DNA of 64,000 nt from Kudoa neothunni (GCA_964304625.1 OZ199840.1:4887200-4951199), one strand, 5' to 3'. Shown: positions 4,831-42,989, numbered from the stretch's first letter. The notes: generated by a model from the sequence alone, not told the origin. A program made the numbers and translations.

Positions 4831-7765
4831 TTAATTCTTCTTCTTTATGAAAACAACTATAACCCCCGCAAGAACAACCACACCTGCAGCTGCAGCAGCT
4901 ATTATTATTCTATATAATTGATTATTTTAATATATATATCAGCAATATTATTTTTACATGGTATTTTTGGATCTAAAATAAAAATATTAAATAAACTGGT
5001 TAAATGAGAATTAGATTACGTAGATTTCATTGTGTCGAACCGTTTCTCCTAAAATGAAATAAATATTTCAATGACGATTCATATTTACCTTTCTTGATTT
5101 CACTATTTCCTTTGATTGATTGGTCATTGCTTACGTAAACCGTTAGATGATAATCGTTTGTGTCTTCAACGTCATAAATTTCAAATTCGTTACATTTTGG
5201 TAGACTTGCACAACCTCCATCGTTTTCCCCATTGCATGATTTAATTAAAACTTTATCAGTATTGGTTGAATCTCTTAATTCCCAACCACAAGTGCTTTTC
5301 AGCAACTCCCCTGTGGCAGTACCGTGGTGATTTTTAATTTGTTTCCATCACGCTTAATGCTCACTATAATTTGTTTGTTTAAATCTTGGTTTGTTGGTAG
5401 GGGATCTAATTTTAATTTTTATATTATTTATAATCAGAATGATGTTATAAAATTTTCGAATAAATTCTACTTTCCGGAATTTCAAGGTTTACTTTCACTC
5501 TTCCATTAACTGAAGTTACTGCTACACGATACTTTTTTAATCGGTCGTAATTGTTAGTGAATAATATTTCGGAACATAAAGGAATCTCAGTGCATGAAGA
5601 TAACGATGGTGAAATAGTTTTTTTTGTTGTCGAGGTAGTTTGACCAGGAGCCGATCTAGCTAACGTGATTTTATCATATTTCGATCTAACAGTGGATCCT
5701 TTTGTTGGTTCTGTAGAAATAGATGCCTGTGGACATTGATAAATCAACTTATATTTGTCTCCATTTTTAATTTCCACATTGTAATGACACTCAGCTGTAT
5801 CATCCGGAGTAGATAATGTGCCTATTATTTTGAAACCTTTATCAACAAATTGTTTCTCAAGTGTGAGTTTTGATTTCACTAAAAATTCATTATTTATTTT
5901 TTTAATTAATTATATACCTGTTGTGATCTGATGTATTTTTGTGCCATAGTCTTTATGAGCAACAACTTTAAGGTCATATTCTGTTCCTGATTTAATCCAA
6001 CAATTGTTTGATTCTCCCTGCAATAACCTCGACAGGGATAGCTACCGACGCACATTGCACAGACATACACATCTTTTCCTCGGGGGACTAACATAATAAG
6101 CACATGTAATGTCACTAGCAGTTAAAACTGCATCTCCACCTATAGCCTTGATAGAAGCAGTTCTCTCTCCTAACGTTGGTGTTACAGCAGGGAATGTTGT
6201 TGTATCACTTTTTTCTATATAATTATCAAAAACAATTTTTACTTATATTTTTACTCGTTCGAAAGAATATATGCTCTTTAAATCCGGTCGGGATGCCAGT
6301 GGCACTTGTAGTAGGTGCAATTGTAAGTATATATGGTTTACCACTTGAAAGTCCTGTTATTGTTAAAGCAGCGCTGCAGTCTGTTGAACTGGTGCCAGCC
6401 GAAACTTCACATGTAACTCCGGTTCCAACACTTGGTAGTGGTTTGTCTGCTGCATAATATTTCACCGAACAACTGTCAAATTTAATGTTTCCCGCTGGAT
6501 TAAATAATTTAACGTTTAAGGTGACACCATTTTTGTTGATATTTGTTAATAATGCCTCCTCGGCAGCTGTAGATTCGGTCACCACTAAGAGGTATTATTT
6601 AAAAGTTAAAATACTCAAATTACCAAACTTTTTCTGTTCGTATCCGGAATACGTTTGGGTATTTCATTGTTAAAGGGAAATGTCTGGATTGGATCAATAT
6701 ATCGACTACAGTTTTTGACCCAGTAAAAATTAATATGACATCATTACAAGGAGCGTAACAATCTTAGTCGTTCCACCACAATTTGATGTATATACATTGG
6801 ACGTAGTAGCGCTAGATGCCGGCTCATGATATTTAATACTGAATCGACATATTTCGAAGGGAAATTTGTTTGTGAATTTTATCAGATATTTACTTTTATC
6901 ATTATCATTATATTTAACATAATATTGTGGTTTATAAACATCCATATTCATCAAAGTATATGCATTTTGCAATTTATAAAAGAAACTTGGATAGCCACCA
7001 CATCTCATTTCGTAATGAGGTATCATCAAATCAAATTCTACCAGGTCATTACTGTCGCTTGCAGCAGTGCAACTATTTGAAACAATTCCTGCTGCGTATT
7101 GTACTCCTTTATAATATATGGAACATGCAACTGGTTTGCATGTGATGGTGCTTAACTTTAGTTTCTTGTCTGCTGTAATTGTTATTGTAACTTGTGGATT
7201 AATCAATAATGCTAATGACGTATTAATAAAACAGAAAACGTCACTATTTTACCTAATTCAAGTCCGAACACTGTCCCACCATTTGTTGTCTGGGTAGGAG
7301 CTGCACCACCTTCCCCTGTGAATACCACCACATATTTAGTCCTTGGTGAAAATTTATCGAATGCAAATTTATTGCCATCCCCTCCACATGTTCTACAACA
7401 ACTATTATTTGCACATTCACCGCCGGTTGGAGCAGTGGTATCAACGGCTTCATAACTACTAAGGTTTTCAGCAGACTTTTTGATACAACACTTTTTAGGA
7501 TCACCGAAATCACTACCAGTCAGTTTTAACTGAACATTTGTTCGGCTATCCTTCGGAATAGAATAACTGAGTGCCTTTGTAGGAGCTTGTGATGGAGTCG
7601 GAGGTTTTGTTGCAACCACTGTTTGTGTCGGAACCGAAGTTTGAACTTGAACCGGTCCTCCATCAAGTGAAACGAACTCAGCTATATTTTATTAAAAATA
7701 GAGTTTAATTGTTAATTACAAGAAGTGACCAAGCATATTCCAAACAAGTGGACTAATAGTTTCAT
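4831..7765 (-). pseudogene. FN3-like module type I membrane protein, copy 1 (10 exons, frameshifted in this assembly)
   Basis: ATG 7765 (MKLLVHLFGICLVTS), same exon layout as copy 4, ends IKKKN-TAA at 4831. At least six 1-nt indels versus paralogues (about 6765, 6660, 5991, 5300, 5310, 5040), mostly in homopolymers. Could be a real pseudogene or assembly error. Confidence 0.75.
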
Positions 7766-7784
7766 TTTATCTTATATGTAATAT

Positions 7785-7872
7785 ACATACGAAAACTATC
7801 GTTTCATTTATCAAACTGAATATTTCAATTGGGCCTTAATGAATAACACTAATGGGATTAAAATTCGCAATA
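7785..7872 (-). promoter_or_regulatory. Conserved upstream block of the membrane-protein family
   Basis: Block TTGCGAATTTTAATC...CCAATTGAAATATTCAGTTTGATAAA...ACGATA.TTTTCGTA recurs about 20-110 nt before the ATG in copies 1, 3 (25052-25135), 4 (28155-28240) and 5 (43010-43093). Function is inferred from position only. Confidence 0.5.
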
Positions 7873-8546
7873 AAACAAATATAGTTGATCAAAAATAAAT
7901 CTAGATTTCAATCTTTAACATTACTTATTAATATTTTTTTTAATATAAAATAGGTAACTTTTAAATCTTCTATATTAATGTGGAATCTTGACATTTGCCT
8001 AATAGTGGGTGGTGGGGCATTTAAAGTTTCGGTTGTTTAAATAGACAACGCTCAATCGAACATATATTTAAATTAGCGCAAAAGCCCCGCTTCGCATAGG
8101 TTTTCTTGCCCAACCAAGTAGACTAAAGCCTTGAATAGGCCAAGATCATTTTAAGTGTAAAGTAAATTAAGAGTATTTGGACAAATAGAACAAAGATTAC
8201 GCAAATAAAATTTGATCTATTTAACTAATATAAAAATGGTGTAAAACCTAAAGAAAACATTTATTAATTCGTTTTTGGTTATAAAGTTTAATATTACGAC
8301 ATATATTTATAATCTACTGAAATACCTAACTTTAGTATGTGAATATATCATCTACTTAGGTTTCTTGACCGTTAATTGTTATGTTTTACCTAGTATGTTC
8401 ACAAAAATGTACATTTAAAGAAAGTAAACATAAATATCACTGGAATTTGCTTTAATTTATTTTTATTTTGTAACGCATTAATATATAAAATGCGGCAACC
8501 AATGAGTTAACTGATAGGGCTCTGTTATTCATTATAAAGAAATTTT

Positions 8547-10484: not shown

Positions 10485-13400
10485 CTAATTTTTCTTTTTG
10501 AAAACCACAAATCCGATTGCGCCTGCAATCATAACTCCAATAACCGCAACCACTATTATTCTAAAATATTTTTATTTAAAACTTAAATAATTTTTCTATC
10601 CATACATGATAAGGGTTTTAGAACTAAATAATAGATTAAATAATTAATTAAATTTTCAAATATTAAACGAACCTTGAGCTACTTTTTGCACCTAATAACA
10701 ATAATTTAAAATATCATTAGGTAAATCAAGTTTTACCTTGCTCGATTACAGCCTCGCCATAAATTGATGGATCCTTAGAACTGTAGACAATCAAATGATA
10801 ACTGTTACCATCTGCTATCCCTCTAATTGTAAACGATTTGCAAGTTGGGAGTGTTCTACATCCCGTATCGCTTGACCTCATACATTGTTTCACTATTGGC
10901 ATCGATTTAGCACTGGAATTGAGTAGTTTCCATTTGCATTTTGACTTGTCATCGAGACTGGATGGAAGTGTACTTTCTATATTGAATACCTCACCATCTC
11001 TTGTTATAGTTACAAATATTATTTTCTCCTTTTCTGTCGGGTTACCTTTTGGAGCCGCTATTTGATTATTTTAATATCTATGTCTTAATATATTTTAGTT
11101 ACTGGGTAATATAGTGATTTCCTTGGGTGATGATTTTTCCACTGCAACGACCAACACTTTATATTCTTCTTTTGCATCATAATCATTGAATATAATCGAA
11201 CTACATAACGGAGGCGACGAACATGTGTTTGAACTTTGAGGAGCTGCTGTTGTGGCATCTGTGGTGGTAGTAATAGATGCAGTTGTTACAGCTTCATTTT
11301 CCTGAGTTTCACCAGCTCTTGCAATATTTGACCTAATAATTGTTGATTTAAGACTAGAAAGTTGGATAGTGCTAGCTTTTTTTGGACTAGGGCTAGGTTC
11401 GGACTCAATTGGTGAGTTCGGTGGAGTTTGAAGAGCTTCAGGAGCAGATGATGGTATCTCAGGCCCCTCACACGTATAAACGTTATTGAACTCGTCATTA
11501 TTCTTGACTTTTATTGTATAACGACAAATGGCTTCAGGAATTTTTTTCGATAATTGTGCATTCAGCTCTAGACCTCTCTCGGTATATTTTTGTGAAAACA
11601 TCAACGTTGCCAGCCCTATTTTTAAATAATGTATAAATCATTTGATAGATATACTCGTTTTGACATTTCCATATACATGCTCTTTATATTCTTTGTCAGC
11701 AACGACTTTAATATCATATGAAGTGTTTGGTTCGAGATCTATTATGGTTATTGAATCCCTACATCTTCCCCTACAAGGGTTCGTCTCAGTGCATGGAACA
11801 GCGTAAAATGTATCTTTATCTGTTGGACTTACGTAATACTCGCAGTTTGGCTCAGCTTTCTTATCAGCTAAACGTTCACCTCCAATGGCTTTTAGCGTAA
11901 TTGTCGAATCTGTTTTAGTTGGAGAGGTGGCTTCGAAGACTTTATTGTCATCTTTTTTTTCTTTAAAAAATTTATAACTTTAATCATTTTTTGTTATTAA
12001 TTATTTACCTGTCTTTATAAGTATTTGTTCTTTAAAAGGGGCTGGCTCTTTTATGTCGGATTCAACTTCAATAATATAAGGTTTCCCTTCAGCAAGCCCT
12101 TCAATCACCACCTTTGTACAATCCGTGTCGCAGGTGGTACTAGTGGTACCGCTTTTGGCTCTGCAAACTGAAGGAGTAGATGACTCTGGTTTTATTTTGT
12201 CTGCAGCATAATGTTTGATAGTACAAGTCGCAAACTTTGTAACTCTATCTGCTGTGGGCTTAAAAAGTGCCAGATCTATTGATACACCCTGATACGTATA
12301 CGTAGATAATAATCCCTCTCCTACCTCAGTAATAGCTATATAAATGTGTTAGAATATTTTATTATTTACTATATAGATACCAAATTTGTTCTGAGTAAAT
12401 CCATCTAAACCATCCGCAGTTTTTGTGAGGTCGTGATTTCTGGTTTGAACTAAAACTTTGTATATTTCTTTTGGTGCAGTTACTGTAAGTTCAATGTCTT
12501 TACACAATGCGTAACACATTTGGTCTGTATTCCCACATTTAGATTCAAATGGCTGATCATTTCCTGCATTTTTCCCATCTTTAATACTGAACACGCATAT
12601 TTCAGACGATAGCATTGATCCTGTGAATTTAATTAACAACTTTGTAGAATCTGTCCTTTTAATAACATAATATTGAGGTTCGTAAATAGCCATGTTTTTC
12701 TTAATATATGTATTTGGCATATTATAAAAGAAACTAGGGTAATTCTCACATCTCATCTCATAATGTGGAATTAACAGATCGAATTCCAAAACGTCAGCTG
12801 AGTTATCTACATCGCATGATTCTCCTTTTGTACCAACACTAAACTTGGCATCCTTGTAATAGACGGGACAATCAACGTTAGTGCAAGTTTTTGTTAAGAG
12901 TTTTAGTTTTTTATCATTACCAGATATTGATACTTGAGGATTTACTATTAATGCTAAAATTAAAATCATTAATTGATTAAAATTTTTATTTAATTACGTG
13001 TTGACAACCCAAACACTTTCCCCCCTTTTGTGTGCTCACTCCCACTAAGACCTTCCTTATCTGCACCAGCTTTTATGTATACGTATTTTGTTCTCGGTGA
13101 AAGGCTGTTAAAGGAAACTTGGCTTTTTTGCTTGGTACATTCGATTATACATTCATTAGTGTCACTGGCTTCATTCCCAGGACAGCTTACAATTTCTTCA
13201 AAAGCGGTTGCAATTTCTAAATTTACGATGGTTTTTGCTTCATTTGATATCATTATGCGGCACTTCTTTGCAGCCGTATATTTTGTGCCATCAAGTTTAT
13301 GCATAAATTGATTTTTGTTACTAGTTTTATCATATATAATCTGGTAAGTTAACGTAGCCTCCGGCGCTGCCGAGGCTACGTTAACTTACCAGATTATATA

Positions 13401-13493
13401 GTGATAAAACTAGTAACAAAAATCAATTTATGCATAAACTTGATGTAATAAATATATACTAAAAGAGTAAAACAATGATCGAATCTTCAGCAT
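10485..13493 (-). CDS. FN3-like module type I membrane protein, copy 2 (divergent paralogue)
   Basis: Same intron positions and phases as the other copies. Textbook FN3 motif ITIIDLEPNTSYDIKVVA. Micro-exons of 19 and 18 nt, then TM IIVVAVIGVMIAGAIGFVVF-KKKN-TAG (10485). The 5' end is uncertain: candidate ATG 13493 with an 84-nt first intron (13376-13459). Confidence 0.8.
13289..13445. repeat. Near-perfect 157-bp inverted repeat (hairpin)
   Basis: Arms 13289-13365 and 13369-13445 are complementary except for two single-base bulges. 3-nt loop GCT. Confidence 0.95.
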
Positions 13494-16340: not shown

Positions 16341-17861
16341 TAGGGTTTCCCGATCAATGTGAGAATTATTGCAATAAAACCGAGAACTTTTGCAATTAAT
16401 GCAAGAAAGTTTCGATTAAACTGGTCTTAGTATAAAATAATTTTTATTTCGTTTATTGTTTAACTAACATTAGCTTCCATCCTTAACCTCCTCGGTATAG
16501 ATTAAAAATGGTGGTTCCCCGATTATAACACGTGATAGTTCCTGATCAAGTCAAGATTTAATGTTTTTTGATTCATAAAGTAAATAACTATATTTAAATT
16601 ATAATGAGTTTATTTAAAAATATATTATTTATATTTATTTCGCCGTCAACTTTTGATACTAGGATGGAACTAAACTCAGAAAATATCCGAAATAAAAAAA
16701 TGATGTCTACTATTCCTGATGAAGATAGAGTTAAAATTATCAACAAGTCACTCGAAGGAAAATCTACGAAACAAATATCTGAAGATCATTCCATTAATTA
16801 TAAGTGTGTTTGGAGAACCATAAACAATTATAACAAGAATGGTTGCATACGTATCCAGAACCGTGGTGGCGATAAAAAGTCAAAGTTGTCTCATGATCAA
16901 AAACGTGAAATTTTATCATTGGTTGACTCTGATTGTTTATTGAGGTTAAATGACATGAAAAGAATGATTCAGGAAAAATTTAATATTTCTGTGAGCAAAA
17001 GAACACTTGACAGAATACTTCAAAATTTTCATTATACAATAAAATGTACTGTACCGATTCCTGAGCGTAGAAATTGTGTGTCTACAATCGAAACTAGATA
17101 TACCTACGCAAAGGATTTTAGAAAATTCGAGCTGGACATGGAGGATAACACATTTATCTTTATGGATGAAGTAAGGTTTCCTGTTGTTACGCGACCAAAA
17201 AGAGAACGGGCTGCTCGAGGTGCTTCTTCATATGTTTCTGTTTCGGCCGCAAGAAGCAGAAACATTTCAGTAGTGGCAGCAATGAATAAATATGGAATGA
17301 TATTTCATAAAATTCAGGATAAGGCGGTGAACGGTGAGGATTTTAAAAGTTGTCTAATTGAAATAAAGGAGGCATATACTTTAAAAAACATTAATGATCC
17401 TATCTTTATTTTGGACAATGCGCGTATTCACCATTATAAAGGACTTAAAGACACTATAGACTTGCTCGGACTCAAGTTATTCTTCTTGTCGCCATACTCC
17501 CCATTTCTGAATTCAATAGAAAATATATTTTCTGTTTGGAAAAATTTGGTAATAAGAGGAGAAGCCAAAAATGAAATGGAACTTAAGGAGTTAATCTCTG
17601 ACAAATTTGATGAAATTACCTCTTCCCATTGTGATAGCTTCTTCAGAAAATGCTAAGGTATCCCCAAAAGGCTGAAAATAGGGAAATAATAAATCAGTAA
17701 TATATTTTTATCCAAATATACTTAAATATATATTGGTTGTTATTATATTATTGAATAGTTTTTATGCGCAATTTAAGTCTAAGTTAATTAAAATGAGTCT
17801 CATTAATTGCAATAGTTCTCGGTTTGATTGCAACAATTCTCACTTTGATCGGGAAACCCTA
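16341..17861 (+). mobile_element. Tc1/IS630-family DNA transposon, nearly intact
   Basis: About 61-bp TIRs TAGGGTTTCCCGATCAA.GTGAGAATT... with 4 mismatches and a TA TSD. Confidence 0.95.
16604..17656 (+). CDS. DD34E transposase
   Basis: HTH-like N-terminus. Catalytic FMDE, ILDNARIHH, LSPYSPFLNSIE with 34 residues between the second D and E. Probable 1-nt loss in an A-run near 17650, since the alternative frame continues MLRYPQKAENREIINQ. Confidence 0.9.
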   Translation: MSLFKNILFIFISPSTFDTRMELNSENIRNKKMMSTIPDEDRVKIINKSLEGKSTKQISEDHSINYKCVWRTINNYNKNGCIRIQNRGGDKKSKLSHDQKREILSLVDSDCLLRLNDMKRMIQEKFNISVSKRTLDRILQNFHYTIKCTVPIPERRNCVSTIETRYTYAKDFRKFELDMEDNTFIFMDEVRFPVVTRPKRERAARGASSYVSVSAARSRNISVVAAMNKYGMIFHKIQDKAVNGEDFKSCLIEIKEAYTLKNINDPIFILDNARIHHYKGLKDTIDLLGLKLFFLSPYSPFLNSIENIFSVWKNLVIRGEAKNEMELKELISDKFDEITSSHCDSFFRKC

Positions 17862-18228: not shown

Positions 18229-21759
<3,531 letters not shown>

Positions 21760-22111: not shown

Positions 22112-25030
22112 TTAATTCTTCTTCTTTATGGAAACGACTATAACCGCTGCAAGAACAACCACACCTGCAGCTGCAGCAGCTATTATTATTCTATATAATT
22201 AATTACGTTAATATGTAACAACAATATGTATTTTTACATGGTATTTTTGGATCTAAAATAAAAATATAAATAAACTGGTTAAAGGAGAATTAGATTACGT
22301 AGATTTCATTGTGTCAAACGTTTCTCCTAAAATGAAATTAATATTTCAATGACGATTCATATTCACCTTTTTTGATTTCACTATTTCCTTTAATTGACTG
22401 GTCATTGCTTACGTAAACCGTTAGATGATAATCGTTTGTGTCTTCAACGTCATAAATTTCAAATTCGTTACATTTTGGTAGACTTGCACAACCTCCATCG
22501 TTTTCCCCATTGCATGATTTAATTAAAACTTTATCAGGATTAGTTGAATCTCTTAATTCCCAACCACAAGTGCCTTCGGCTACTCCCTGGGGCAGTAACG
22601 TGGTGATCTTTAATTTGTTTCCATCACGCTTAATGTTTACTATAATTTGTTTGTTTATATCCTGGTTTGTTGGTAGGGGATCTAATTTTATTCATTTATA
22701 TTATTTATAATTGTAATATTATGAAATTTTTGAAAAAAATTTTACTTTCTGGGATTTCAAGGTTAGCTTCCACTCTTCCATCAACTGTAGTTACTACTAC
22801 ACGATACTTTTTTAATCGATCATAACTATTAGTGAATAAGATTTCGGAACATAACGGAATCTCAGTGCATGTAGGGGGAGATTGTGAACTAGCTTTATTT
22901 GTTGGAGGAGTAGTTTGATCAGCAGCCGACCTAGCTACCATGATTTTATCATATTTCGATTTAACAGTGGATCCTTTAGCTGGCTCTGTAGAAATAGATG
23001 CTTGTGGACATTGGTAAATCAACTTATATTTATCTCCATTTTTAATTTCGACATTATAATGGCATTTAGCTGTATCATCTGGGGTAGATAATGTGCCTAT
23101 TATTTTGAAACCTTTATCAACAAATTGCTTATCAAGTGTGAGAGTCGATTTCACTAAAAATTCATCATTTATTTTTTTATCTAATTATATACCTGTTGTG
23201 ATCTGATGTATTTTGGTGCCATAGTCTTTATGAGCAACAACTTTAAGGTCATATTCTGTTCCTGGTTTTAATCCAACAATTGTATGTGTCTCCCTGCAAT
23301 AGCCTCGACAAGGATAGCTATCGACGCACATTGCACAAACGTACACATCCTTTCCTCTGGGACTAACATAATAAGCACATGTAACGTCATCACTTGTTAG
23401 ACCTTGTTCTCCAACTATGGCTTTGATTGAAGCAGTTCTCTCTCCTAATGTTGGTGTTACTTCAGGAAATGTTTTTGCGTTGTCTTTTTCTACATAATTA
23501 TCAATAAAAGTTATTAATTATTTCTAATTTTTACCCGTTCGAAAGAATATATGCTCTTTAAATCCGGTTGGTACGTTACTTGATACTGTGGGTGTAATTG
23601 TAAGTATATATGGTTTACCGCTTGAAAGCCCAGTTATTGTTAAAGTTGTGCTGCAGTCTTTTGGACAAGCAGTATTAGAAGTCGCACAATTAGCTTCTGC
23701 CCCATCAGTTGGTGGTGGTTTGTCTGCTGCATAATATTTCACTGTACAAGTTGAAAATTTAGTGACTTCATTTGGGTTAAATAGTGGAACATTCAAAGTA
23801 ACGCCGTTTTTTTTTATGTTTGATAATAATGCATCTTCAGAAACAGATGATTCAGTCACGACTACGAGAACTTATTTTAAAGTAAAAATACTCAAATTAC
23901 CAAACTTTTTCTGTTCGTATCCGGGATATTTAATGGTATGTAATTGTAATGGAAAGTGTCTGGATTTGATCAATATATCGACTACAGTTTTTGAAGCAGT
24001 AGAAGTTAGTACAACATCATTACAAGGAGCATAACATTCTTTATTTGTTCCACCACAATTCGAAGTGTACACATTGGACGTAGTAGCGCTAGATGCCGGC
24101 TCATGATATTTAATACTGAATCGACATATTTCGAAGGGAAATTTGTTTGTGAATTTTATCATATATTCACTTTTACCATTATTATTATATTTAACATAAT
24201 ATTGTGGTTTATAAACATCCATTTTCATCAAAGTATATGTGTTTTGCAATTTATAAAAGAAACTTGGATAGCCACCACACCTCATTTCATAATGAGGTAT
24301 CATCAAATCAAATTCAACCATGTCATTACTGCTGCTTGCAGTAGTACAACTACTCCCCACAGGTCCTGCTGCGTATTGTACTCCTTTGTAATATATGGGA
24401 CATGCAACTGGTTTGCATGTGACAGTGCTTAATTTTAGTTTCTTATCTTCTGTGATTGTTATTGTAACTTGTGGATTAACCAATAATGCTAATGACGAGT
24501 TAAAAAACATAAAATATCATTAGTTTACCTATTTCAAGTCCAAACACTGTTCCACCATTAGTTTTTTGGATTGTAGTTGCCCCAGCTACCCCAGTAAAAA
24601 CCACCACATACTTTGTCCTTGGTGAAAATTTATCAAAGGTCCATTTATTATCGTTTCCTTCACATGTTCTACAACAATTCGCTGCGCATTGACTGTCGGG
24701 TTGAGAGCAGGTATCTATGCCTTCATAACTTCTAAGGTTCTCATCAGATTTTTCAATGTAACATTTGATGGAATTGCCAAATTCACTACCAGTCAGTTTT
24801 AATTGAATTTTTGGCCCGTCATTCTCTTTTAGAATAATATAGCTGAGTGCCTTTGGTGGAGCTTCTGCTGGAGCCGGAACCGTAGCTCTTCCTCCAGAAG
24901 AATGTTGAACATCTGCATCTTCCGCATCGAGTGAAACAAGCATAGCTATATTTTGTTTAAAAATAGAATTTAATTTTTAATTACAAGAAATGAACAACAA
25001 AATTCCAAAAAAGTGTACTAATAATTTCAT
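22112..25030 (-). CDS. FN3-like module type I membrane protein, copy 3
   Basis: ATG 25030 (MKLLVHFFGILLFIS), 10 exons colinear with copy 4, open frame in the exons checked, ends IKKKN-TAA at 22112. Confidence 0.88.
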
Positions 25031-25349
25031 TTTATCTTATATGTAATATTCATACGAAAATTATCGTTGCGTTTATCAAACTAAATATATCAATTGGGTA
25101 TTAATGAATAATACGAATAAGATTAAAATTCGAAAAACAAACATATATAGATTATTAAAAATAAATCATAAATTTATATTTTAACATTGCCCTTAATATT
25201 ATATTTTGGAATATAGAATTAATAATCTTTTTATGTTCCATATTTGTGTATAATCTTAACTTTGCCTGATAGTGGGAGATGGAGCATTTATTGTTTAAGG
25301 TGTTTTTATATAGGAAAGTATCATTCGAAAATATATCTAAATAGTAATA

Positions 25350-28005: not shown

Positions 28006-28259
28006 GCATCATCCACTACTGGGAAAAGTTGAGATTTCACACCATTATGGAATATGAAGAGATTGTTAATTCCATATTTCTAAGTAAAATATTTGTAAGA
28101 ATTTCTAAAAATAGAAATTTTAGATTTATTTTTAATAATCCATATTTGTTTTGCTTGCAAATTTTAATCCTATTCATAAAATTCTTTAATGTCCAATTGA
28201 AATATTCAGTTTGATAAATATTACGATAATTTTCGTATATAAATTACACATAAAATAAA

Positions 28260-31110
28260 ATGAAACTACTGGTGCACTTCTTTGGAATTTTATTTCTTAT
28301 TTCTGGTAATTAATAATTAAATTTTTAATATTTTAATAAAATATAGCTACGTTAGTTTCACTTGATGTGGGAACTGTTGATGTTCAACTTCCTGTTGGAG
28401 AACAAGCTGCGGCTGCGGTACAAACTCAAAGTTCTAAACAAGCTCCTGCAAAGGCACTCAGTTACTCCGTTTTAAAAGGAGAGAGTGAAATAAAGGTTCG
28501 ATTAAAACTGACTGGTAGTGATTTTGATGGATCTAAAAGATGTTATATCCAAAAGTCTGCTGAAGACGTTAACAGTTATACAGACATAGATACATGTTCT
28601 GGTAGTGTGGGTCAGTTCCCAAATAATAATTGTTGTAGAACATGTGTGGGAGATGACAATAAATTGACCTTTGATAAATTTTCACCAAGGACTAAGTATG
28701 TGGTGGTTTTTACTGGGGACGCTACAGCAACAACAATCCAAAAAACTAATGATGGAACAGTATTCGGACTTGAATTAGGTAAACTAATGAGGTTTTATGT
28801 TTTCTTAATTCGTCATTAGCATTATTGGTTAATCCACAAGTTACAATAACAATCACAGAAGATAAGAAACTAAAATTAAGCACTGTCACATGCAAATCAG
28901 TTGCATGTCCCATATATTACAAAGGAGTACAATACGCAGCAGGAACTGCTTCAAGTACTAGTAATGATAACGAAGTGGAATTTGATTTGATGATACCTCA
29001 TTACGAAATGAGATGTGGTGGCTATCCAAGTTTCTTTTATAAATTGCAAAACACATATACTTTGATGAATATGGATGTTTATAAACCACAATATTATGTT
29101 AAATATAATGATAATGGTAAAAGTAAATATTTGATAAAATTCACAAACAAATTTCCCTTCGAAATATGTCGATTCAGTATTAAAGATAAGGATACTCCAG
29201 TTGATGCGGGTACAAATAATGAATATACTTCAAATTGTGGCGGAACAAAAAAAGAGTGTTACGCTCCTTGTAATGATGTCGAATTAACTTTTACTGCTTC
29301 AAAAACTATAGTCGATGTATTAATTCAAACCAGACATTTTTCTTTGAAAAAAGATAACACGAATTATTCCGGATATCACCAGAAAAAATTTGGTAATTTG
29401 AATATTTTAACTTATAAATAATCCCTCTTAGTTGTGACTGAACCTTCCGCATCTGGGAGTGCATTATTATCTAACACCAAAAAAGATGGTGTCACTTTGA
29501 ATGTTCCTCTATTTAATCCATCAGAAGACAACAAATTTGACAGTTGTACGGTGGCCTATTATGCAGCTGACAAACCACCACGAACTGATGGGGCAGGTGC
29601 TAAATGTGGTGGTTCGACTAGCTCATGTAAAACTGACTGCAACACTGCTTTAACAATAACTGAACTTTCAAATGGTAAACCATATATACTTACAATCACA
29701 CTCACAAAAACAACTGAATCCGCCTCAAACTTTAAAGAGCACATATTCTTTCGAACGGGTAGAGATATATATAAGTAATAATTTGTATTGATAATACTAT
29801 AGAAAACGATAACACAAAAACCTTTTCTGCTGTAAAACCAACTTTAGGCGAAAGAACCGCATCGATCAAGGCTATAGATGGCGTCGAATCTTTAAAACCT
29901 GTAGATATTACATGTGCTTATTATATTAGTCCCCGAGGAAAGGATGTGTACGTTTGTGCAATGTGCGTCGATAGCTATCCCTGTCGTGGTTACTGCAAGG
30001 AGACACAAACAATTGTTGGATTAAAATCAGGAACAGAATATGACCTTAAAGTTGTTGCTCATAAGGACTATGGCACCAAAATACATCAGATCACAACAGG
30101 TATATAATTAGTTAAAAAAATAAATAATGAATTTTAAGTGAAATCAACACTCACACTTGAGAAGCAATTTGTTGATAAGGGTTTCAAAATAATAGGAACA
30201 CTGTCTACCCCAGATGATACAGCTAAATGCCATTATAATGTCGAAATTAAAAATGGAGACAAATATAAGTTGATTTATCAATGTCCACAGGCATCTATTT
30301 CTACAGAACCAACAAAAGGATCCACTGTTAAATCTAATTCACCATCGTTATCTTCATGTACTGAGATTCCTTTATGTTCCGAAATATTATTCACTAACAA
30401 TTACGACCGATTAAAAAAATATCGTGTAGCAGTAACTACAGTCGATGGAAGAGTGGAAGCTAACCTTGAAATCCCAGAAAGTAAAATTTTTTCAAAAATC
30501 TCATATTACAATTATAAATAATATAAATGAATAAAATTAGATCCCCTACCAACAAACCAAGATTTAAACAAACAAATTATAATAAGCATAAAACGTGATG
30601 GAAACAAATTAAAAATCACCACGGTACTGCCACAGGGAATAGCCGAAGGCACTTGTGGTTGGGAATTAAGAGATTCAACCAATCCTGATAAAGTTTTAAT
30701 TAAATCATGTAATGGGGAAAACGATGGAGGTTGTGCAAGACTTCCAAAATGTAAAGAATTTGAAATCGTTGACGTTGAAGACACAAACGATTATCATTTG
30801 ACGGTTTACGTAAGCAATGACCAATCAATCAAAGGAAGTAGTGAAATCAAGAAAGGTGAATATGAACCGTCATTAAATTATTCATTCCATTTTAGGTGAA
30901 ACGTTTGATACAATGAAATCTACGTAATCTGATTCTCATTTAACTAGTTTATTTATATTTTTATTTTAGATCCAAAAATACCATGTAAAAATACATATTA
31001 CTGCTATATATTAACATAATTAATTATATAGAATAATACTAGTAGCAGCTGTTGTAGGTGTGGTTGTCCTTGCAGCGGTTATAGTTGTTTTCATAAAGAA
31101 GAAGAATTAG
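28260..31110 (+). CDS. FN3-like module type I membrane protein, copy 4 (817 aa by my splice model)
   Basis: Exons 28260-28305, 28347-28778, 28820-29392, 29432-29758, 29803-30099, 30139-30480, 30541-30855, 30896-30923, 30970-30984, 31032-31110. All introns are GT-AG, 39-60 nt, and the 2454-nt total stays in frame. Signal peptide MKLLVHFFGILFLISA, FN3 motif [41 protein letters not shown], tail KKKN. Confidence 0.92.
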
Positions 31111-31652: not shown

Positions 31653-34600
31653 GGTAATGGTATAGTGTGTAGCTCCCAAAATTCTGCCCCTTGCGCATCT
31701 GTAAATTTACCGAAATAAGACCGATTCGAATATTTACAATTTTAAAATATGGGCCAACTATACATCTTTTTCAAATTACAATTATAAAATTTTTTCATCA
31801 ATCTTCGTTCGTCTCATCGCGATACGCTCACTAGAATGCGCATTCAACATTGATGTAATTTTCTACTTGTAATTTATTTAATAATGAACTTTTAACTTAA
31901 GACCCATTAAATTATTATTATTTTAATAATACTTTTACCTCATGGTAGTATTGTTAGGGTGATTTATAATAAAACGTCTCTTTTGACAAAAATAAGACGA
32001 TAGATGTAACTTTTATTGCACATACCTATATATAACATTTGTTTAACAAATTTTCTAGCTTATGAATTTTTTAATTCCTCGTTGAATGTGTCTACAGTAA
32101 GTTAAGCGACAAATAAATGGATCATATCTATTTTCTTACGTCATTGACGCAATTTAATGAGGCAATAATAAATATAATAATGTATTATTATCGTGATTAA
32201 CCCTCCAAGTAAAATGGGATGTATTTCCACCCCAGGAGATTGTTGATGACAATTTTGTCCCATTACAGACGCGATAGATACAATTCATATTTCTGCTAAA
32301 TTTTTAAATTTATGTAACACGTAAAACGCGAAGACAAAATTAAAATTTTTTTTATTGTGACTTTAATTAACGCTAAAACAGCTTCCGAGTAAAATTGGGG
32401 TGTATTTACATCCCAAGTTTTTTGATATAATTATTTAAACTATTTTTAGAAATATATTTGGAACTTTTAGATAATTCTAATGGTAAAATAACCCCTAAAC
32501 TGACAATAACTTATTTAGTTTAATGAATACGCGCGCGAAAAGTAATGAGTTAATGTGATTACAGTGGTAGTTGTTCTGATTATGATTTCTTATTTGATGA
32601 TAATATATCATCAGATAATGAACATTGTACCATTAATGTACCACCATTCTCATTAGTTGATAAACATGGAGTGCTGTGGACAACCGAAAAACCCATAGCC
32701 TCTAGAACGTCAGCTGGAAATGTTATAAATATTCATCCAGACCTTTCTCATCATATATCTCAAAATGTTGACGAATCTGTTGACAATGCCAAGGTGTTAT
32801 TTAATCATGATATGTACAAAGTTATTTTAAAATTAACAAACGAATATGGAGAAAAATTGTTTGGTCATGCTTGGATAAAATTAGACGAAACCGAACTTGA
32901 TAGCTTTATCAGATGTTTAATTTTAATGAGCATATATAAAATCAACCATGAACCTGTTAAGGAATTATTTGGATATGAAGAAGGACGAAAAATATACCTT
33001 GATCTTTTGTCATTAACAAGATTTCGACAAATTATAGGGGCACTTCACTTTGATGACTCTGAAACTAACTTACTTGAGAAAAGTTAACGCCAAATTTTGG
33101 CATATCGGGGATCTTTGGAACATTTGGGTTGGTTTACTTAATCGTAGCTTTCGCCCATATGAAGATCTCTGCGTCGACGAACAACTTGTTGCATTAACAG
33201 GTCGCTGCAAATTCAGTGTATGCCTATGAAGCCTGCCAAGTATGGGATTAAGTTTTTTCTTGGTTGAACCTAGATCAACATATGTTTGCAATTTGTCCGT
33301 CGTCTTGGGTAAGCGGTCTCAGAATGGCACAAGAACTGTTAATGATGGGAAAAACATTGTTTTGCAACTTACTGAACCAATCATAAAATCTGGACGGAAC
33401 ATTGTTTGTGACAACTTTTTCACATCAATTGAGTTAGCTGATGAGTTGTTAAATAAAAAACTTACAATTATCGGAGCCATGCGTGCAAACAAGCGTGACA
33501 TTCCATTCTATCTACGACCTCAAAGAGACACCCCGTTATATTCGCCTCTTTTTGTATTTAATAACAAATAGATGATATTAAGTTATTTACTGAGGAAGAA
33601 CAAGCCTGTATATATGCTTTGTTCATCTTCAAGTAATACACGCTGCAACTGAAGTGCCATTTAAGCCTGACATTGTATCACAGTATAATTCGATAAAAGG
33701 GGGAGTTGATACCATCGCAAGGTTAGTGGCTTCAATTAGTGTCAGAAGAATCAATCGTCGTTGGCAACAAATTTTGTCTTTCAATATGATCGATATTACC
33801 TTGATAAATGCTTTTTGCATATTCAAGGAACTCTTCTGTTTGTCTTATCAGAAGAGATTTCTTGAGAATGATGATTGAGCAAATGGTACGTCCACTGTTA
33901 TCAATAAAAAGTCAAAGTATTCAACCCTACATTAGACTTATTGTAGCACGGGAAACGACTCTTCAAGGCAGATGTCGATTATTTGAGAGAAAAAATGACA
34001 AAAAACTTCCTAAAAGTGTGGATTTTGTGATAATTTTTATTGAATAAAATAGTCGTAATGTATTCGTCTTATCTGTTGTAATAAATAATACACATATTAG
34101 TTTGTCTATTTGTTGATTTTTATGTGTACTTACAGTTCTAAAAAATTGGTCAATTTTCTTTGTACGATTAAGGTTGAGCATTAATAGATGCATGTAAATT
34201 TTTCTGAGCGCCAATACATCCAAGTATACCCACGCGTACGCATCGAATGTTTAACAATGTTTTCTCGTTAATTACACAAAACTTTTTCTCATTACACGGG
34301 AATTTATATCTATTATTTACCAATAATTTGGTTAAAAAACCTGGGGTGTATTTACACTATAATTTTACTCGGAAGGTGTAAATTTTCATGTGTCTTAGAG
34401 GGCTAAGTATAAATATGTTAAACTCGTTTTTATTGATGCTCTCGATAAATCGTCGTTTATGATTTTAAAAGTACTCATAAATTTCTTCGATATATCCCAT
34501 ATAATATTGTAATTATACAAAAAACCGATAACGAAATTAATTTATGTTTAAACCAGGTGCCTGCCTCCATGAGCCAAATATGGTTTAGCTTATAATTATA

Positions 34601-35758: not shown

Positions 35759-38700
35759 AAAATTACAAGTCGTTTTGATCACATTGTCATTTTGGCGAGT
35801 ACATTTATAACATCTTTTTTAATTTGTTTAACGTGATATTTCCTCAAAAATATTATGTTCTGGAATATCTATAATAGATTTCTTTTAAATTAATCATATT
35901 GATTACTTTTATTTTCAATTTGCGATTGTAACAGTTGCATCGCTAAAGTCTTAAGGAAATCTTTCCTTTGCACTTTTATATTTATTTTGAGACCATATAT
36001 AATGTATGAATTAATAAAAGTTACGTATAATGAAGTGTGAAAAATAACAGCTGGTCTTCTTTTAATTTTTCTATGACTGGAATAACTGGCATACATTTGA
36101 TCTATTGTGTCAACTCTTCCTCTAGAGGATTAGTTGTAAAAATTAATCATCTCAGGAAGCTTTTTTGGATGCTTCGTATCGATAATGGGCTTGTGATGAA
36201 ACCAACTTAGAATAGGGACGGATTTTTTCTTTTTGGATACATAGGATAATAATGTAAGATTTTTTGTAAATGAAAATTTTGATGTAAATTGCTCTCGTGT
36301 TTTTGAAGGTAAATGAGTGGAGGGGATTTCTTTTTTATTCTTTCTTATAGTCCAAACCACAGTCATGCCATTGTTTAGAAATTCTTCAAAAAGTGGGACA
36401 GAAATGAACCAATTGTCAAAAGTTATATTTCTCCCATATTGTAACACTGATTTTACAAGACGCATTATTAAACGCTGTGGAGAATTATCAACTTTATATA
36501 CACTGCCACATTGATTAAGCTCCAATGTATACCTCAAGGTTTAGTGTATAATCTGTTTTAGAGTCACATAAATTAGAATCTTTATGCCATATTTGGAAGG
36601 TTTTGATGGAATATATTGTTTGAAAATACATCGTCCTCAAAACGACCTCAGCATTTCGTCAATAGTGAGATACTCTGTGGGGCTGTAATATTTCATAAAT
36701 TCGGAGTTGATATAATTGAAAATATCTCTTATTTTGGAAAATTTATCCTGATTTGAGTTCACTGATTCGGTAGAATCATCGTTATAGCGTAGGTATCTTT
36801 TTAAAAGTTTAAATCTGTTACTGCTGAACTGAATGTCTTTCTGAGAATAGCGAAACCAAAATCCTCATCAGTCGAAGTTCCTGCATATCTTTTAGATTCT
36901 CTTTTTTTTACCTAAAAAATAGTGTAGACCAATAAATTCCTTCAATTCATAAAAATCGAATTCAACGCAATCCCGTAATCTTGTGAAATTTGATTGTATC
37001 TTCTTCATATGATTATTTGCAAACGTCAATATTCGAGGTAGTATTTCATCAGTAATGAATAGACCCAAAATTCGAGACTATGTATACGTCATCAGGGATT
37101 TTTATTTGATGTTTCTCCATAATCATATCATGCTTCCTTTTCTTTGAAAATAGTCCTACAAGCCTCTGGCACCAATCAAATTTAGTAGTTAGTAACTCTG
37201 GATTCAAAATAGACGACGTGTTATCTCTATGTTCATCTATGTCACTTTGGAGCTATTATTCTCGCATTCATCATCAAAAAAACATGGTACACACGAAATT
37301 TGAGCTATATGAATCTGACTTGGAAAAATCAGATTCATCGTTATGGAAGTTGCAAAATCTGTTTTGACTCATCGAATTATAATATATTATAGAATAGCCA
37401 AAAATCTATATACATAATAAAGTTTTTATGTCTGTCCGTGTGTGTGTGTGTCAGTTTGCAGTAGTACACATGTGCCACGGAGAAATTTTCTTTAAATATA
37501 GCTGTAAGTTTGTATTTGACTAGATAAAACCATTAATGAAAATCGATCATTCACTTAGAAGTATAAATATAGTCAATAACACAGTCCGAAGTAAGGAATT
37601 TTCTGGTTGTCTTCACAAATAGAAGATTAAAAACACCTGAATAATATTGATATTTGTTTACTTCTGATTGATAGCCAATTAATATGAACTTTTACTCACT
37701 ATATAGAAAAAGAATCTCTTAATTATGGTATAAATATTCTAAAAATTTTACATAAGCCTGTTCGGAGAACTTTTGAGACAAATAAACCTATTAACGCCAC
37801 ATTTACAAGAGTTGTCATATTTCCCTTAAAATTTGAAGCATAAACAAGTTATTTGGTATGTATTTTCTCTTTTCGAGCGTTATGGATATAGTTCAGCAAA
37901 AAAGATTACGATCATTTTAAATAAAACACATAATTTGAATCTCTATATGTATCCTAATTATTCCTTACCCCAGACCTTGAGGTTAATATTCAAATTAATA
38001 TACTGTTTTCTTTATGCTTGAATTAATTTATTATGATATAAAAGCTGCATAAAAATACAGTCCCTTCTCAATGCGTGCCATGTAAGTTAATAAGAAATTA
38101 TTGATCTATTCGATCTAACCGATATTTTCATAAAGTTTTCGTTAATCTAAGAATAGTTCAGTACGAAGAGATTTTTTTAGGGCAGTTAAACAGTACGTTA
38201 ATTTTTAAAAGGGTGCACTCGTTCAAGGAAACCAGTTGATGTTTAAGCATTACTGCAATTTTTCAAACCAAAAACACCTTTACATTTTTTATTTAATCTC
38301 ACTTTGTTAATTAAATGTGTATATTTTTGAACCAGTAAGTATTCCTGATAAAAAGCAAGGTTGGATTTATTTATAAATAGGGGAATTTTGTTACAATAAT
38401 GAATACGTAAGTTACCGCTCACAACTTTTTAAAACATCATTGGCATCATTATAAAATTGCGAAAAAGGAGTAACAACTAATATTTAAATTTCGGAGACAT
38501 CTTAGGTTGATTTTATTTTTTTTATCGTTTGTAGACTAATAAATTTTATAACTAGAAGGATTAATTTTTATCGCATGATTTTGAAAATAACTGAAAGTCC
38601 TATTTAAGTTACTTAATGATTTGGTTTCATAAATAACTGAACTTTAATCGCTAATTATATTTCTCTTAAAATTATGGTCATAATAGTTTTGGCCAATAAT

Positions 38701-39110: not shown

Positions 39111-39114
39111 TTAA

Positions 39115-39892: not shown

Positions 39893-42800
39893 TTAATTCT
39901 TCTTCTTTATGAAAACAACTATAATGGCTGCAAGGACAACCACACCTACAACAGCTCCTACTACTATTATTCTATATAATTAATTATGTTAATATGTAGC
40001 AACAATATGTATTTTTACATGGTATTTTTGGATCTAAAATAAAAATATAAATAAACCGGTTAAATGAGAATTAGATTACGTAGATTTCATCGTGTCAAAC
40101 GTTTCTCCTAAAATGAAATGAAGAATTGGAACACGATTCATATTTACCTTTCTTGATTTCACTAATTCCTTTGATTGATTGGTCATTGCTTACGTAAACC
40201 GTTAGATGATAATCGTTTGTGTCTTCAACGTCAACGATTTCAAATTCGTTACATTTTGGTAGACTTGCACAACCTCCATCGTTTTCCCCATTACAGGATT
40301 TAATTAAAACTTTATCAGTATTGGTTGAATCTCTTAATTCCCAACCACAAGTGCTTTCAGCTACTCCCTGTGGCAGTACCGTGGTGATCTTTAATTTGTT
40401 TCCATCACGCTTAATGCTCACTATAATTTGTTTGTTTAAATCCTGGTTTGTTGGTAGGGGATCTAATTTTATTCATTTATATTATTTATAATTGTAATAT
40501 TATGAAATTTCTGAAAAAGTTTTACTTTCTGGGAATTCAAGGTTAGCTTCCACTCTTCCATCAACTGTAGTTACTACTACGCGGTATTTTTTTAATCGAT
40601 CATAATTATTAGTGAATAATATTTCGGAACATAAAGGAATCTCAGTGCATGAGGATAACGATGGTGAATTAGATTTATTTGTTGGTGGAGCAGTTTTATC
40701 AGCAACCGATCTAGCTATCGTAATTTCATTATATTTCGATTTAACAGTGAGTCGGTTAGTTGATTCTGTAGAAATAGATGCCTGTGGACATTGATAAATC
40801 AACTTATATTTTTCTTCATTTTTAATTTCGACATTATAATGGCATTTAGCTGTATCATCTGGGGTAGACAGTGTTCCTATTATTTTGAAACCCTTATCAA
40901 CAAATTGCTTCTCAAGTGTGAGTGTTGATTTCACTTAAAATTCATTATTTATTTTTTTAACTAATTATATACCTGTTGTGATCTGATGTATTTTGGTGCC
41001 ATAGTCCTTATGAGCAACAACTTTAAGGTCATATTCTGTTCCTGATTTTAATCCAACAATTGTTTGTGTCTCCTTGCAGTAACCACGACAGGGATAGCTA
41101 TCGACGCACATTGCACAAACGTACACATCCCTCCCTCGGGGACTAATGTAATAAGCACATGTAATGTCTTCAGGTTTTAAAGATTCTTCGCCATCTATAG
41201 CCTTGATCGATGCGGTTCTTTCGCCTAAAGTTGGTTTTACAGCAGAAAATGTTTTTGTGTTATCATTTTCTATAGTATTATCAATACAAATTATTACTTA
41301 TATATATCTCTACCCGTTCGAAAGAATATATGCTCTTTAAAGTTTGAGGGGGTTTCAGTTGTTTTTGTGAGTGTGATTGTAAGTATATATGGTTTACCAC
41401 TTGAAAGTCCTGTTATTGTTAAAGCAGCGCTACAGTCTGCTGAACAGGTGCCAGCCGAAACTTCACATGAAACTCCTGTTCCAACACTTGGTAGTGGTTT
41501 GTCTGCTGCATAATAGGCCACCGTACAACTGTCAAATTTGTTGTCTTCTGATGGATTAAATAGAGGAACATTCAAAGTGACACCATCTTTTTTGATGTTA
41601 GATAATAATGCACTCCCAGATGCGGAAGATTCAGTCACAACTAAGAGGGATTATTTATAAGTTAAAATATTCAAATTACCAAATTTTTTCTGGTGATATC
41701 CGGAATAATTCGTGTTATCTTTTTTCAAAGAAAAATGTCTGGTTTGAATTAATACATCGACTATAGTTTTTGAAGCAGTAAAAGTTAATTCGACATCATT
41801 ACAAGGAGCGTAACACTCTTTTTTTGTTCCGCCACAATTTGATTTATATTCATTATTTGTATTCACATTAACTAGAGTATCCTTATCTTTAATACTGAAT
41901 CGACATATTTCGAAGGGAAATTTGTTTGTGAATTTTATCAGATATTTGCTTTTATCATTATCATTATCATTATATTTAACATAATATTGTGGTTTATAAA
42001 CATCCATATTCGTCAAAGTATATATATTTTGCAATTTATAAAAGAAACTTGGATAGCCACCACATCTCATTTCATAATGAGGTATCATCAAATCGAAGTC
42101 CACTTCGTTATCATTTGTGTTTGCGACAATACAACTACTCCCCACAGTTCCTGCTGCGTATTGCACTACTTTGTAATATATAGGGCATGTAACTGGTTCG
42201 CATGTGATGGTGCTTAATTTTAGTTTCTTTTGATCTGTAATTGATATTGTAACTTGTGGATTAACCAATAACGCTAATATCAAGTTAAGAAAACATAAAG
42301 CATCATTAGTTTACCTAATTCAAGTCCAAACACTGTTCCACCATTAGTTTTCTGGGAAAGATCTGTGGCCCCATTCCCTGTGAAAACCACTACATACTTT
42401 GTCCTTGGTGAAAATTTATCGAAGGCAAATTTATTTCCCTCTCCCTTACATGTTCTACAACAACTATTATTATTGCATTCACCGTCGGTTTGAGGAGTGG
42501 TATCTATGTCTTCATAACTACTGAGGTTTTCAACAGACTTTTTGATACAACATTTTTTAGAATCACCGAAACCACTACCAGTCAATTTTAACTGAACATT
42601 TATTCCGCTATCCTTCAGAATAGAATAACTGAGTGCCTTTGTAGGAGTTTTTTCTATAGCTGGAGTTTGTGCTGAAGTTGGAGTTGGAGTTGGTGCTGAA
42701 GTTGGAGTTGGAGTTGGTGCTGAAGTTGGAGTTGGAGTTGGTGCTGAAGTTGGAGTTGGAGTTGGTGCTGAAGTTGGAGTTGGAGTTGGTGCTGAAGTTG

Positions 42801-42989
42801 GAGTTGGAGTTGGTGCTGGAGTTAGAGGTTGTGTTGCAACCACTGGTAGTGTTGGACTCGAAGATTGAACTTGAACAGTTTCTCCATCAAGTGAAATGAA
42901 CCCCGCTATATTTTATTAAAAATGGAATTTATTTGTGATTTACAAGAAATGACCAGCAAAATTCCATAAAATTGTACTAATAGTTTCAT
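39893..42989 (-). CDS. FN3-like module type I membrane protein, copy 5
   Basis: ATG 42989 ([15 protein letters not shown]), colinear 10-exon structure, expanded PT-rich stalk, ends IKKKN-TAA at 39893. Confidence 0.9.
42671..42814 (-). repeat. Coding minisatellite, 6 x 24 bp (PTPTPTSA units)
   Basis: Six perfect copies of GCTGAAGTTGGAGTTGGAGTTGGT. Confidence 0.95.

Follow-up and report, generated by a model that had tools for sequence, protein, structure and literature searches.

A 64,000-nucleotide stretch of the genome of the myxozoan Kudoa neothunni (OZ199840.1:4887200–4951199 of assembly GCA_964304625.1; hereafter the window) carries five ten-exon genes of one family, the stop codon of copy 1 ending at position 4831 and the ATG of copy 5 lying at position 42989. 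These genes constitute one small array of a family with at least 214 members, the products of which are predicted to combine a signal peptide, a tandem series of fibronectin type III (FN3)-like domains and a single transmembrane helix. We consider it rather likely that this large family encodes type I membrane glycoproteins that, at the host–parasite interface, form a diversified layer serving as coat or for adhesion; judged from its sequence, the family is a strong candidate for a variable surface coat of Kudoa. The original prediction, made from the same DNA, had described a five-gene cluster at 4831–42989. All five copies lie exactly there, but only copies 3, 4 and 5 are intact, and the genome-wide count given below shows that a five-gene cluster was an underestimate of the scale.

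To our genome-wide searches, in which copy 3 served as the query, were available 40.26 Mb of sequence in four contigs (three of 11–17 Mb and one of 18.2 kb; GC content about 30%). The published description of the assembly, which was recovered from yellowfin tuna data, gives three chromosomes, a circular mitochondrion, a GC content of 30.41% and a median intron length of 49 nt (PMC12239612). Nematode cuticle-collagen N-terminal domains are absent from the genome, and a nematode origin was therefore rejected. A DNA pattern representing the invariant motif of exon 3 (YE..C..YP.F) had 214 hits in the genome, as compared with one hit for the reversed control; the resulting count of at least 214 genes is a lower bound. 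With the exon 2 query, the best 150 of 255 first-look candidates were scored and the weakest listed match had an E of 5e-12; with the exon 4 query, the best 150 of 365 were scored, the weakest listed match had an E of 2e-13, and 143 of these best 150 were free of stop codons. Family members are arranged in head-to-tail arrays with a spacing of about 7–10 kb on all three chromosomes, including a dense block in the terminal 0.85 Mb of chromosome C1 that holds 21 of the 51 hits listed for that chromosome. The six module exons were collinear and separated by intron-sized gaps in 40 of the 40 paralogous loci examined, and the 46-nt exon 1 encoding the signal peptide recurred as well, distant members included. 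Such a recurrence of six exons, with order and intron gaps unchanged, is far beyond chance, and the family has expanded by tandem duplication into arrays on three chromosomes. It thus displays a large clustered repertoire of paralogues, a trait of variant surface antigen systems.

Open ten-exon splice models were obtained from copies 3, 4 and 5 only (Table 1); they encode 839, 817 and 899 amino acids, respectively. The proteins of roughly 820 residues that had been proposed for all five copies are therefore realized in these three, but not in copy 1, with at least six frame breaks, or in copy 2, with a TAA codon in exon 1. Each gene consists of a 46-nt exon 1, which encodes a hydrophobic signal peptide, six module exons (exons 2–7), two micro-exons of 28 and 15 nt, and a last exon, which in the window copies encodes a 21-residue transmembrane helix followed by KKKN. 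The three terminal exons were located by eye and by the conserved micro-exon sequence. Introns of the family genes are 38–64 nt long; introns 1–7 are in phase 1 and introns 8 and 9 in phase 2. The splice models thus bear out the signal peptide, the phase of introns 1–7 and the single transmembrane helix with its four-residue tail, all of which had been read from the window beforehand. By contrast, the 'P/T/A stalk' of that description is not a stalk, because the P/T/A-rich stretch is N-terminal and hence membrane-distal. The organization into one phase-1 exon per module holds in general, but exon 3 encodes two domains; the number of about seven modules is correct when exon 3 is counted as two. 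'Cys-rich' turned out to be an overstatement, the content being moderate at about 31 Cys in about 839 residues (approximately 3.7%, counted on the exon translations), which corresponds to roughly two disulfides per module.

Individual copies differ in several respects. Exon 6 of copy 4 is 66 nt shorter with the frame kept, and the N-terminus of copy 5 is extended by a mucin-like (PTPTSAPT)n stretch, which a tandem repeat in its exon 2 encodes. The reading frame of copy 1 is broken twice each in exons 3 and 5 and once each in exons 7 and 8 (the latter being 29 nt long in place of 28), with stop codons in exons 3 and 5; this copy yields no open protein, and its high-scoring segment pairs in the genome search were split. 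Two of the six breaks fall in homopolymer runs, and assembly error is possible for those two; the coverage was about 7x HiFi. Since six breaks occur in a single gene next to clean neighbours, copy 1 is a probable pseudogene. In copy 2, the TAA is the 14th codon of exon 1, the exon for the signal peptide, and the palindrome found upstream of the other copies (see below) is absent. The 5′ end of this copy (13289–13445) looks rearranged.

We also observed that some family members have phase-1 introns that are a multiple of three nucleotides (3n) long and devoid of stop codons, giving open reading frames (ORFs) of up to 445 amino acids that read through two introns (L041:1797–3131, L015:421–1479, L038:2178–3008 and others). 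Retention of such an intron would preserve the frame and add a linker of 13–17 residues. These introns are notable in that a tendency to intron retention has been reported for myxozoans (PMC12239612).

To characterize the modules, searches and structure predictions were carried out exon by exon; the fold models, all of them predictions, cover exons 2–3 and exon 7, and the two-module queries were the natural read-through ORFs with a 3n-long stop-free intron. The model of exons 2–3 (alignment A4, 62 rows) had a predicted local distance difference test score (pLDDT) of 73 and contained three β-sandwiches at residues 26–139, 151–230 and 231–347. Its best Foldseek matches were the tandem FN3 receptors IL-12Rβ1, gp130, Tie2 and IL-17R (E 2e-4 to 1e-3). 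In the structural comparison with VIA, the exon 2 domain matched IFNAR1 with a Z of 6.8 and a root-mean-square deviation (rmsd) of 2.8 over 89 residues, while the first and the second domain of exon 3 gave Z values of 7.0 and 6.8, the latter against LEP-R FnIII. The tool's own guidance rates these values as middling, but the FN3 assignment was consistent. The exon 7 model (A7, 38 rows; pLDDT 83, predicted TM-score 0.76) had seven strands; nearly all of its top 50 VIA matches were FN3 domains, the best being integrin β4 FnIII-4 (Z 9.2, rmsd 2.4 over 88 residues), and Foldseek concurred. Thus, the models of exons 2–3 and exon 7 are FN3-type sandwiches, as the original prediction had anticipated for the modules.

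Sequence profiles pointed in the same direction. The exon 5 profile matched titin FN3 arrays with an E of 2.6e-8 and fibronectin with an E near 1e-3; the exon 4 profile matched titin (E 5e-3), and a single exon 4 sequence matched Pfam fn3 with an E of 0.04. Pfam fn3 (PF00041) was hit by 31 of 35 exon 5 members, all of them under threshold. In hhalign, exons 4 and 5 were related to each other with 78% probability (E 1.8e-5). The E–F strand/tyrosine-corner motif is near-invariant in alignments A2, A3 and A7, and the profile alignments with titin and fibronectin cover exactly that motif. All four FN3-like strings quoted in the original prediction are present in the window (one each in exons 2, 4 and 5, plus IIDLEPNTSY, which copy 2 has in exon 5). 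Exon 6 carries a long S/T/P-rich insertion. In mixed multi-exon alignments, MAFFT aligned exon 5 with exon 4 and exon 7 with exon 6, and it also aligned half of exon 6 with exon 5; this hints that the modules are related. Because different exons were stacked on each other, these mixed alignments (A1, A5 and A6) were unusable as multiple sequence alignments and were left out of folding. Matches of the exon 5 profile to Plasmodium CSS (E about 0.05) and to NMDA-receptor ligand-binding domains (E about 1) were weak and were taken as chance. The ectodomain is directly predicted by these models and profiles to comprise about seven FN3-like domains with about two conserved disulfides each, exon 2 contributing one, exon 3 two, and exons 4–7 one apiece.

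We then compared the paralogues with one another. Among 11 close paralogues, the median ratio of nonsynonymous to synonymous substitution rates (dN/dS) was 0.18–0.36 per exon, and variability decreased in the order of exons 2 and 4, exon 6, exon 3, exon 5 and exon 7. For 13 young pairs with a proportion of synonymous differences (pS) below 0.30, the pooled ratio of nonsynonymous to synonymous proportions (pN/pS) was 0.29–0.52 per exon. In 15-codon windows the values rose to about 0.7–1.0 only in loops and to 1.4 in the low-complexity N-terminus, with dS near saturation for many pairs. Most of the change affects exons 2 and 4, on the membrane-distal side, and loops bracketed by Cys residues, and exon 3 is the most conserved large module. 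The paralogues are under purifying selection overall, and the family members are functional genes, not decaying repeats.

Synonymous divergence was uneven, by several fold, along single gene pairs. The pair L019/L020 (C3:10.78 Mb) had a pS of 0.00–0.01 in exons 6–7 but 0.40 in exon 4, and the same was seen for L013/L014 and others, with values near 0 in exons 6–7 and of 0.3–0.4 in exons 2 and 4. In the window, copies 4 and 5 had a pS of 0.39 in exon 2 and of about 0.1 in the other exons. Such differences between exons of the same pair indicate segmental gene conversion; they are the signature of conversion that homogenizes the membrane-proximal exons 6–7 while the distal end diverges.

A palindromic element precedes four of the five window genes (Table 1). 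The pattern occurs at four sites in the 64 kb, each 22–23 nt before a family ATG, where 0.47 would be expected by chance. Variants of the form ACG-N8-CGT are kept at the same position in distant subfamilies, and the strict palindrome had 37 matches in the genome, as against 16 for the control; of the 37, at least 27 are situated immediately upstream of a family gene. This palindrome is a candidate for a family-specific promoter or start-site element.

Relatives of the family were sought outside K. neothunni. An exhaustive hidden Markov model search of 1.84 billion protein representatives with the exon 3 profile gave 17 hits, all fragments; the 10 that were looked up were all unnamed singletons. 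This outcome agrees with the earlier view of an unnamed, lineage-restricted multigene family. Seven hits were traced to four datasets of fish-associated or environmental origin (Logan SRR31175926 and SRR33849685; ENA ERZ795007 and ERZ28624939). The related contigs (L051–L057) were AT-rich, with a GC content of 17–39%, and kept the order of exons 3-4-5-6 and the intron gaps at 25–47% protein identity. One of them, 7 kb long, contained SNF5 and ribosomal S14 genes only 67–75% identical to those of the K. neothunni genome; with housekeeping genes at this level of identity, the contig comes from another, related parasite species. Judging from these contigs, the family is older than this species, and it was detected only here and in a few Kudoa-like sources. 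A homologous-protein search with exon 3 of copy 2 returned no match, a blank that is weak owing to the length window of the search, and an ESM Atlas look-alike search with exon 3 returned no usable match. Our literature search found nothing linking Kudoa or Myxozoa to fibronectin type III families. A paper on Myxobolus honghuensis mentions an expanded 'tenascin' family, which might be a similar FN3 expansion.

How could these proteins function? According to the interpretation we favour, a signal peptide would be followed by a disordered P/T/A-rich N-terminus, probably O-glycosylated, and by a rod of about seven FN3-type β-sandwiches; a short juxtamembrane piece derived from the two micro-exons would lead into one transmembrane helix, which with its basic tail of 4–5 residues would anchor the rod in the membrane. 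We infer surface display from the combination of signal peptide, mucin-like tip, FN3 rod and transmembrane helix. The proteins would be located on the parasite plasma membrane, of the plasmodium and/or of migrating stages, as a coat or adhesion layer. All 19 of the 19 C-terminal ends recovered have tails of 4–5 residues (KKKN, KKRN or KKKRD, also KKRD). Since so few residues are cytoplasmic, autonomous signalling is excluded, and the proteins would act by display, binding or shielding.

The following observations weigh against a host-interface coat. Of the five copies in the window, two (1 and 2) are damaged. The curated cut-off of PF00041 was not reached, the best exon 5 member scoring 20.8 bits as compared with the required 25 (E 4.7e-4), and exon 6, which lies outside the fold models, resembles exon 7 only at the C-terminal Cys-Pro-Cys...Y.L.V motif (E 1.4e-3, probability 17%). 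The KKxx form of an endoplasmic reticulum (ER)-retrieval signal, with Lys at −3 and −4, is present in 18 of the 19 tails. A pN/pS above 1 was not found in any exon, and hence nothing speaks positively for diversification driven by immunity. The plasmodia of Kudoa develop within muscle fibres, where antibody pressure is presumably low, and the analogy with antigenic variation is weakened accordingly. Finally, the K. neothunni data contain almost no parasite RNA reads (PMC12239612). We rank the host-interface coat first and parasite–parasite adhesion or recognition second, decoy binding and ER residence being minor alternatives.

The second of these, that the family mediates contacts between parasites or parasite cells (cell-in-cell adhesion, assembly of valve and capsulogenic cells in spores, or self/non-self recognition between plasmodia), is a serious though clearly less likely explanation. 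FN3 arrays with a transmembrane helix, as suggested by the fold matches, are the classic architecture of metazoan cell adhesion, and myxozoans are cnidarians with obligate cell-in-cell stages. The overall purifying selection agrees with such a role, and a variable distal domain on a conserved base would suit homophilic recognition as well. However, more than 200 paralogues are far above what structural adhesion would require, homologues were detected in a few Kudoa-like datasets only, and a tail of four residues provides no link to the cytoskeleton or to signalling.

A more ambitious form of the coat idea is a true antigenic-variation or clonal surface-diversity system, in which each cell or stage would express one gene, or a few, out of more than 200, the choice being made via the ACG-N8-CGT palindrome, and segmental gene conversion would shuffle distal FN3-like modules onto a conserved base. 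The selection data fit a diversified family and are no proof of such a system, which we regard as unlikely.

It is improbable that the ectodomains serve as decoy receptors or binders of soluble factors of the host (for example cytokines, complement, growth factors), a role that would liken the double FN3 of exon 3 to the cytokine-receptor homology module. The best Foldseek and VIA matches of exons 2–3 include IL-12Rβ1, gp130, the common γ chain, IL-10R1, IFN-λR1 and tissue factor, with tandem alignments spanning 150–160 residues, and exon 3, so well conserved, is the module in question. As in class I/II cytokine receptors, exon 3 presents two tandem FN3 domains, the first of which contains Cys pairs, and it aligns structurally to IL-6R, IL-11Rα, IL-10R1 and tissue factor. 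However, the two-domain fits had Z values of only 6–7 and an rmsd of 7–11 Å, as any tandem FN3 pair gives (Z about 6 with a large two-domain rmsd for the receptor module), at 4–10% sequence identity. The two hallmarks of class I cytokine receptors, WSxWS and a signalling domain, are both missing: the exon 3 consensus has no Trp at all, and the tail of 4–5 residues has no Box1/2.

Very improbable, in our view, is retention in the ER or early Golgi by the C-terminal di-lysine, with the proteins acting within the secretory pathway instead of at the surface. Besides the frequent KKxx form of the tails, there is the precedent of yeast Wbp1, which uses KKTN (PMC3521961). In the Kudoa proteins, however, the di-lysine directly abuts the transmembrane helix with 0–1 spacer residues, whereas the minimum spacing between motif and membrane in known COPI cargo is five residues (PMC3521961), and it is for this reason that ER retention is a minor rival. 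In addition, basic residues after a transmembrane helix are also an ordinary stop-transfer signal, and ER residents would not be expected to form a hypervariable family whose more than 200 members carry mucin-like tips. That the copies are decaying repeats or transposon cargo is hardly credible: repeats make up 45.6% of the genome and gene prediction leaned on protein hints (PMC12239612), DNA transposons lie between the copies and copies 1 and 2 are damaged, but pN/pS is 0.3–0.5 in all exons, stop codons are rare among the best exon 4 hits, splice sites and phases are conserved, as is the 46-nt first exon, and the order of exons 3–6 with their intron gaps is kept in other taxa.

A coat of this kind would bear on the question of how myxozoans manage to persist in immunocompetent fish, for which candidate variant-surface families have been proposed only recently and in one species (Sphaerospora molnari). 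The published annotation of K. neothunni contains 5,316 proteins, predicted from protein hints only (PMC12239612), and the at least 214 genes correspond to about 4% of this number. The family may have been missed or masked in the annotation, in which case it would be by far the largest myxozoan gene family reported. It could furnish defined antigens and surface markers for Kudoa, which parasitizes commercial tuna as well as other fish; it further offers FN3 domains re-engineered with disulfides and a promoter element open to test. Should the proteins not be at the surface, the family would still stand out as a lineage-specific expansion in an animal genome that is very reduced.

Table 1. Positions of the family genes, their upstream palindromes and neighbouring features in the window (e, exon)
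Feature	Position	Strand	Remarks
Copy 1	4831..7765	-	Probable pseudogene; all ten exons recognisable
Palindrome ACGATAGTTTTCGT	7789..7802	-	23 nt before copy 1 ATG
Copy 2	10485..13435	-	Divergent subfamily member; e2-e10 open; e1 13390-13435
Tc1/mariner-type transposase ORF	16598-17653	+	352 aa, intact-looking; Pfam DDE_3 E 1e-22, HTH_23; between copies 2 and 3
Copy 3	22112..25030	-	Intact; splice model, every exon open; e1 24985-25030, e2 24529-24945, e3 23901-24488, e4 23535-23861, e5 23193-23489, e6 22746-23153, e7 22367-22681, e8 22299-22326, e9 22238-22252, e10 22112-22190
Palindrome ACGATAATTTTCGT	25054..25067	-	23 nt before copy 3 ATG
Palindrome ACGATAATTTTCGT	28223..28236	+	23 nt before copy 4 ATG
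Copy 4	28260..31110	+	Intact; splice model, sequence read directly; e1 28260-28305, e2 28347-28778, e3 28820-29392, e4 29432-29758, e5 29803-30099, e6 30139-30480, e7 30541-30855, e8 30896-30923, e9 30970-30984, e10 31032-31110
piggyBac-type transposase fragments	32554-33084; 35893-36864	+; -	Pfam DDE_Tnp_1_7; split into several ORFs; between copies 4 and 5
Copy 5	39893..42989	-	Intact; splice model; e1 42944-42989, e2 42315-42905, e3 41680-42273, e4 41314-41640, e5 40973-41269, e6 40526-40933, e7 40148-40462, e8 40080-40107, e9 40019-40033, e10 39893-39971
Tandem repeat, 24 nt x 7	42661..42827	-	In copy 5 e2; Tandem Repeats Finder, 97% matches
Palindrome ACGATGATTTTCGT	43012..43025	-	One mismatch; 22 nt before copy 5 ATG
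Multi-exon gene with CAP/SCP domain	about 47800-51500	-	Pfam CAP E 1.4e-6 at 50425-51105
Simple repeat, about 560 bp	55529-56094		Open in several frames on both strands; translations CLSVCLSV, TDRHTDRH

Besides the family genes, the window contains transposase sequences of two types, a gene with a CAP/SCP domain and a simple repeat (Table 1). Outside the window, the small contig of 18,219 bp (C4) is probably mitochondrial; its GC content is 44%, as against about 30% for the nuclear contigs, and it has a cox1-like ORF of 459 amino acids that is open only under genetic code 4 (TGA = Trp). Its first 10 kb yielded neither a tRNA nor an Rfam rRNA match.

Comparison with known systems places the family beside several of them without merging it into any. 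Hydractinia Alr proteins likewise are clustered, diversified, single-pass β-sandwich proteins of a cnidarian. They have Ig-like (V-set-like) domains, mostly with signalling tails, and no similarity to them was found, the comparison having been made through fold searches only. With Giardia VSP, Plasmodium RIFIN/STEVOR, the 6-Cys proteins, Toxoplasma SRS and the Sphaerospora molnari families, the Kudoa family shares the large clustered organization in a parasite, the signal peptide, the disulfide-rich ectodomain, the single transmembrane helix and the very short basic tail; as in the protozoan variant families, the distal part is variable, the proximal part is conserved and signs of gene conversion are present. 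In contrast to Giardia VSP, with more than 10% Cys, the Kudoa proteins have about 3.7% and no CXXC in the six module consensus sequences, which sets them apart from VSPs. Their predicted fold is of the FN3 type, unlike that of VSP, RIFIN or SAG1, and their tails lack CRGKA and [KR]x[KR]xK[KR]. The VSP-like and RIFIN-like families proposed for S. molnari, with 18, 27 and 10 genes (bioRxiv 10.64898/2026.02.11.705288; PMC11792419), are far smaller than the Kudoa family and differ from it in fold, Cys content and tail as well.

The affinities to the FN3 superfamily (PF00041; titin, fibronectin, integrin β4 and receptor protein tyrosine phosphatases (RPTPs)) concern the domain itself. Differences are that the family scores under the Pfam cut-off with sequence similarity only in the last third of the domain, that every Kudoa domain has about two conserved disulfides, lacking in canonical FN3, that exon 3 fuses two domains, and that exon 6 has its S/T/P-rich insertion. 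On the other hand, the predicted models have the seven-strand sandwich in exon 2, in each half of exon 3 and in exon 7, the E–F motif L/I-x-G-L-x-x-G-x-x-Y-x-[LI]-x-[VI] is present, and there is one domain per phase-1 exon in a tandem array preceding a transmembrane helix. CD45 and the RPTPs are single genes, as opposed to more than 200 Kudoa paralogues, and there is no detectable sequence homology between them and the Kudoa family, which has neither a phosphatase nor any other cytoplasmic domain beyond its tail. In overall layout, however, they are alike, with a mucin-like, O-glycosylated N-terminus (predicted in Kudoa), followed by Cys-containing, degenerate FN3 domains and one transmembrane helix, and CD45 d3–d4 is among the best structural matches of the exon 7 model (VIA Z 8.8, 17% identity).

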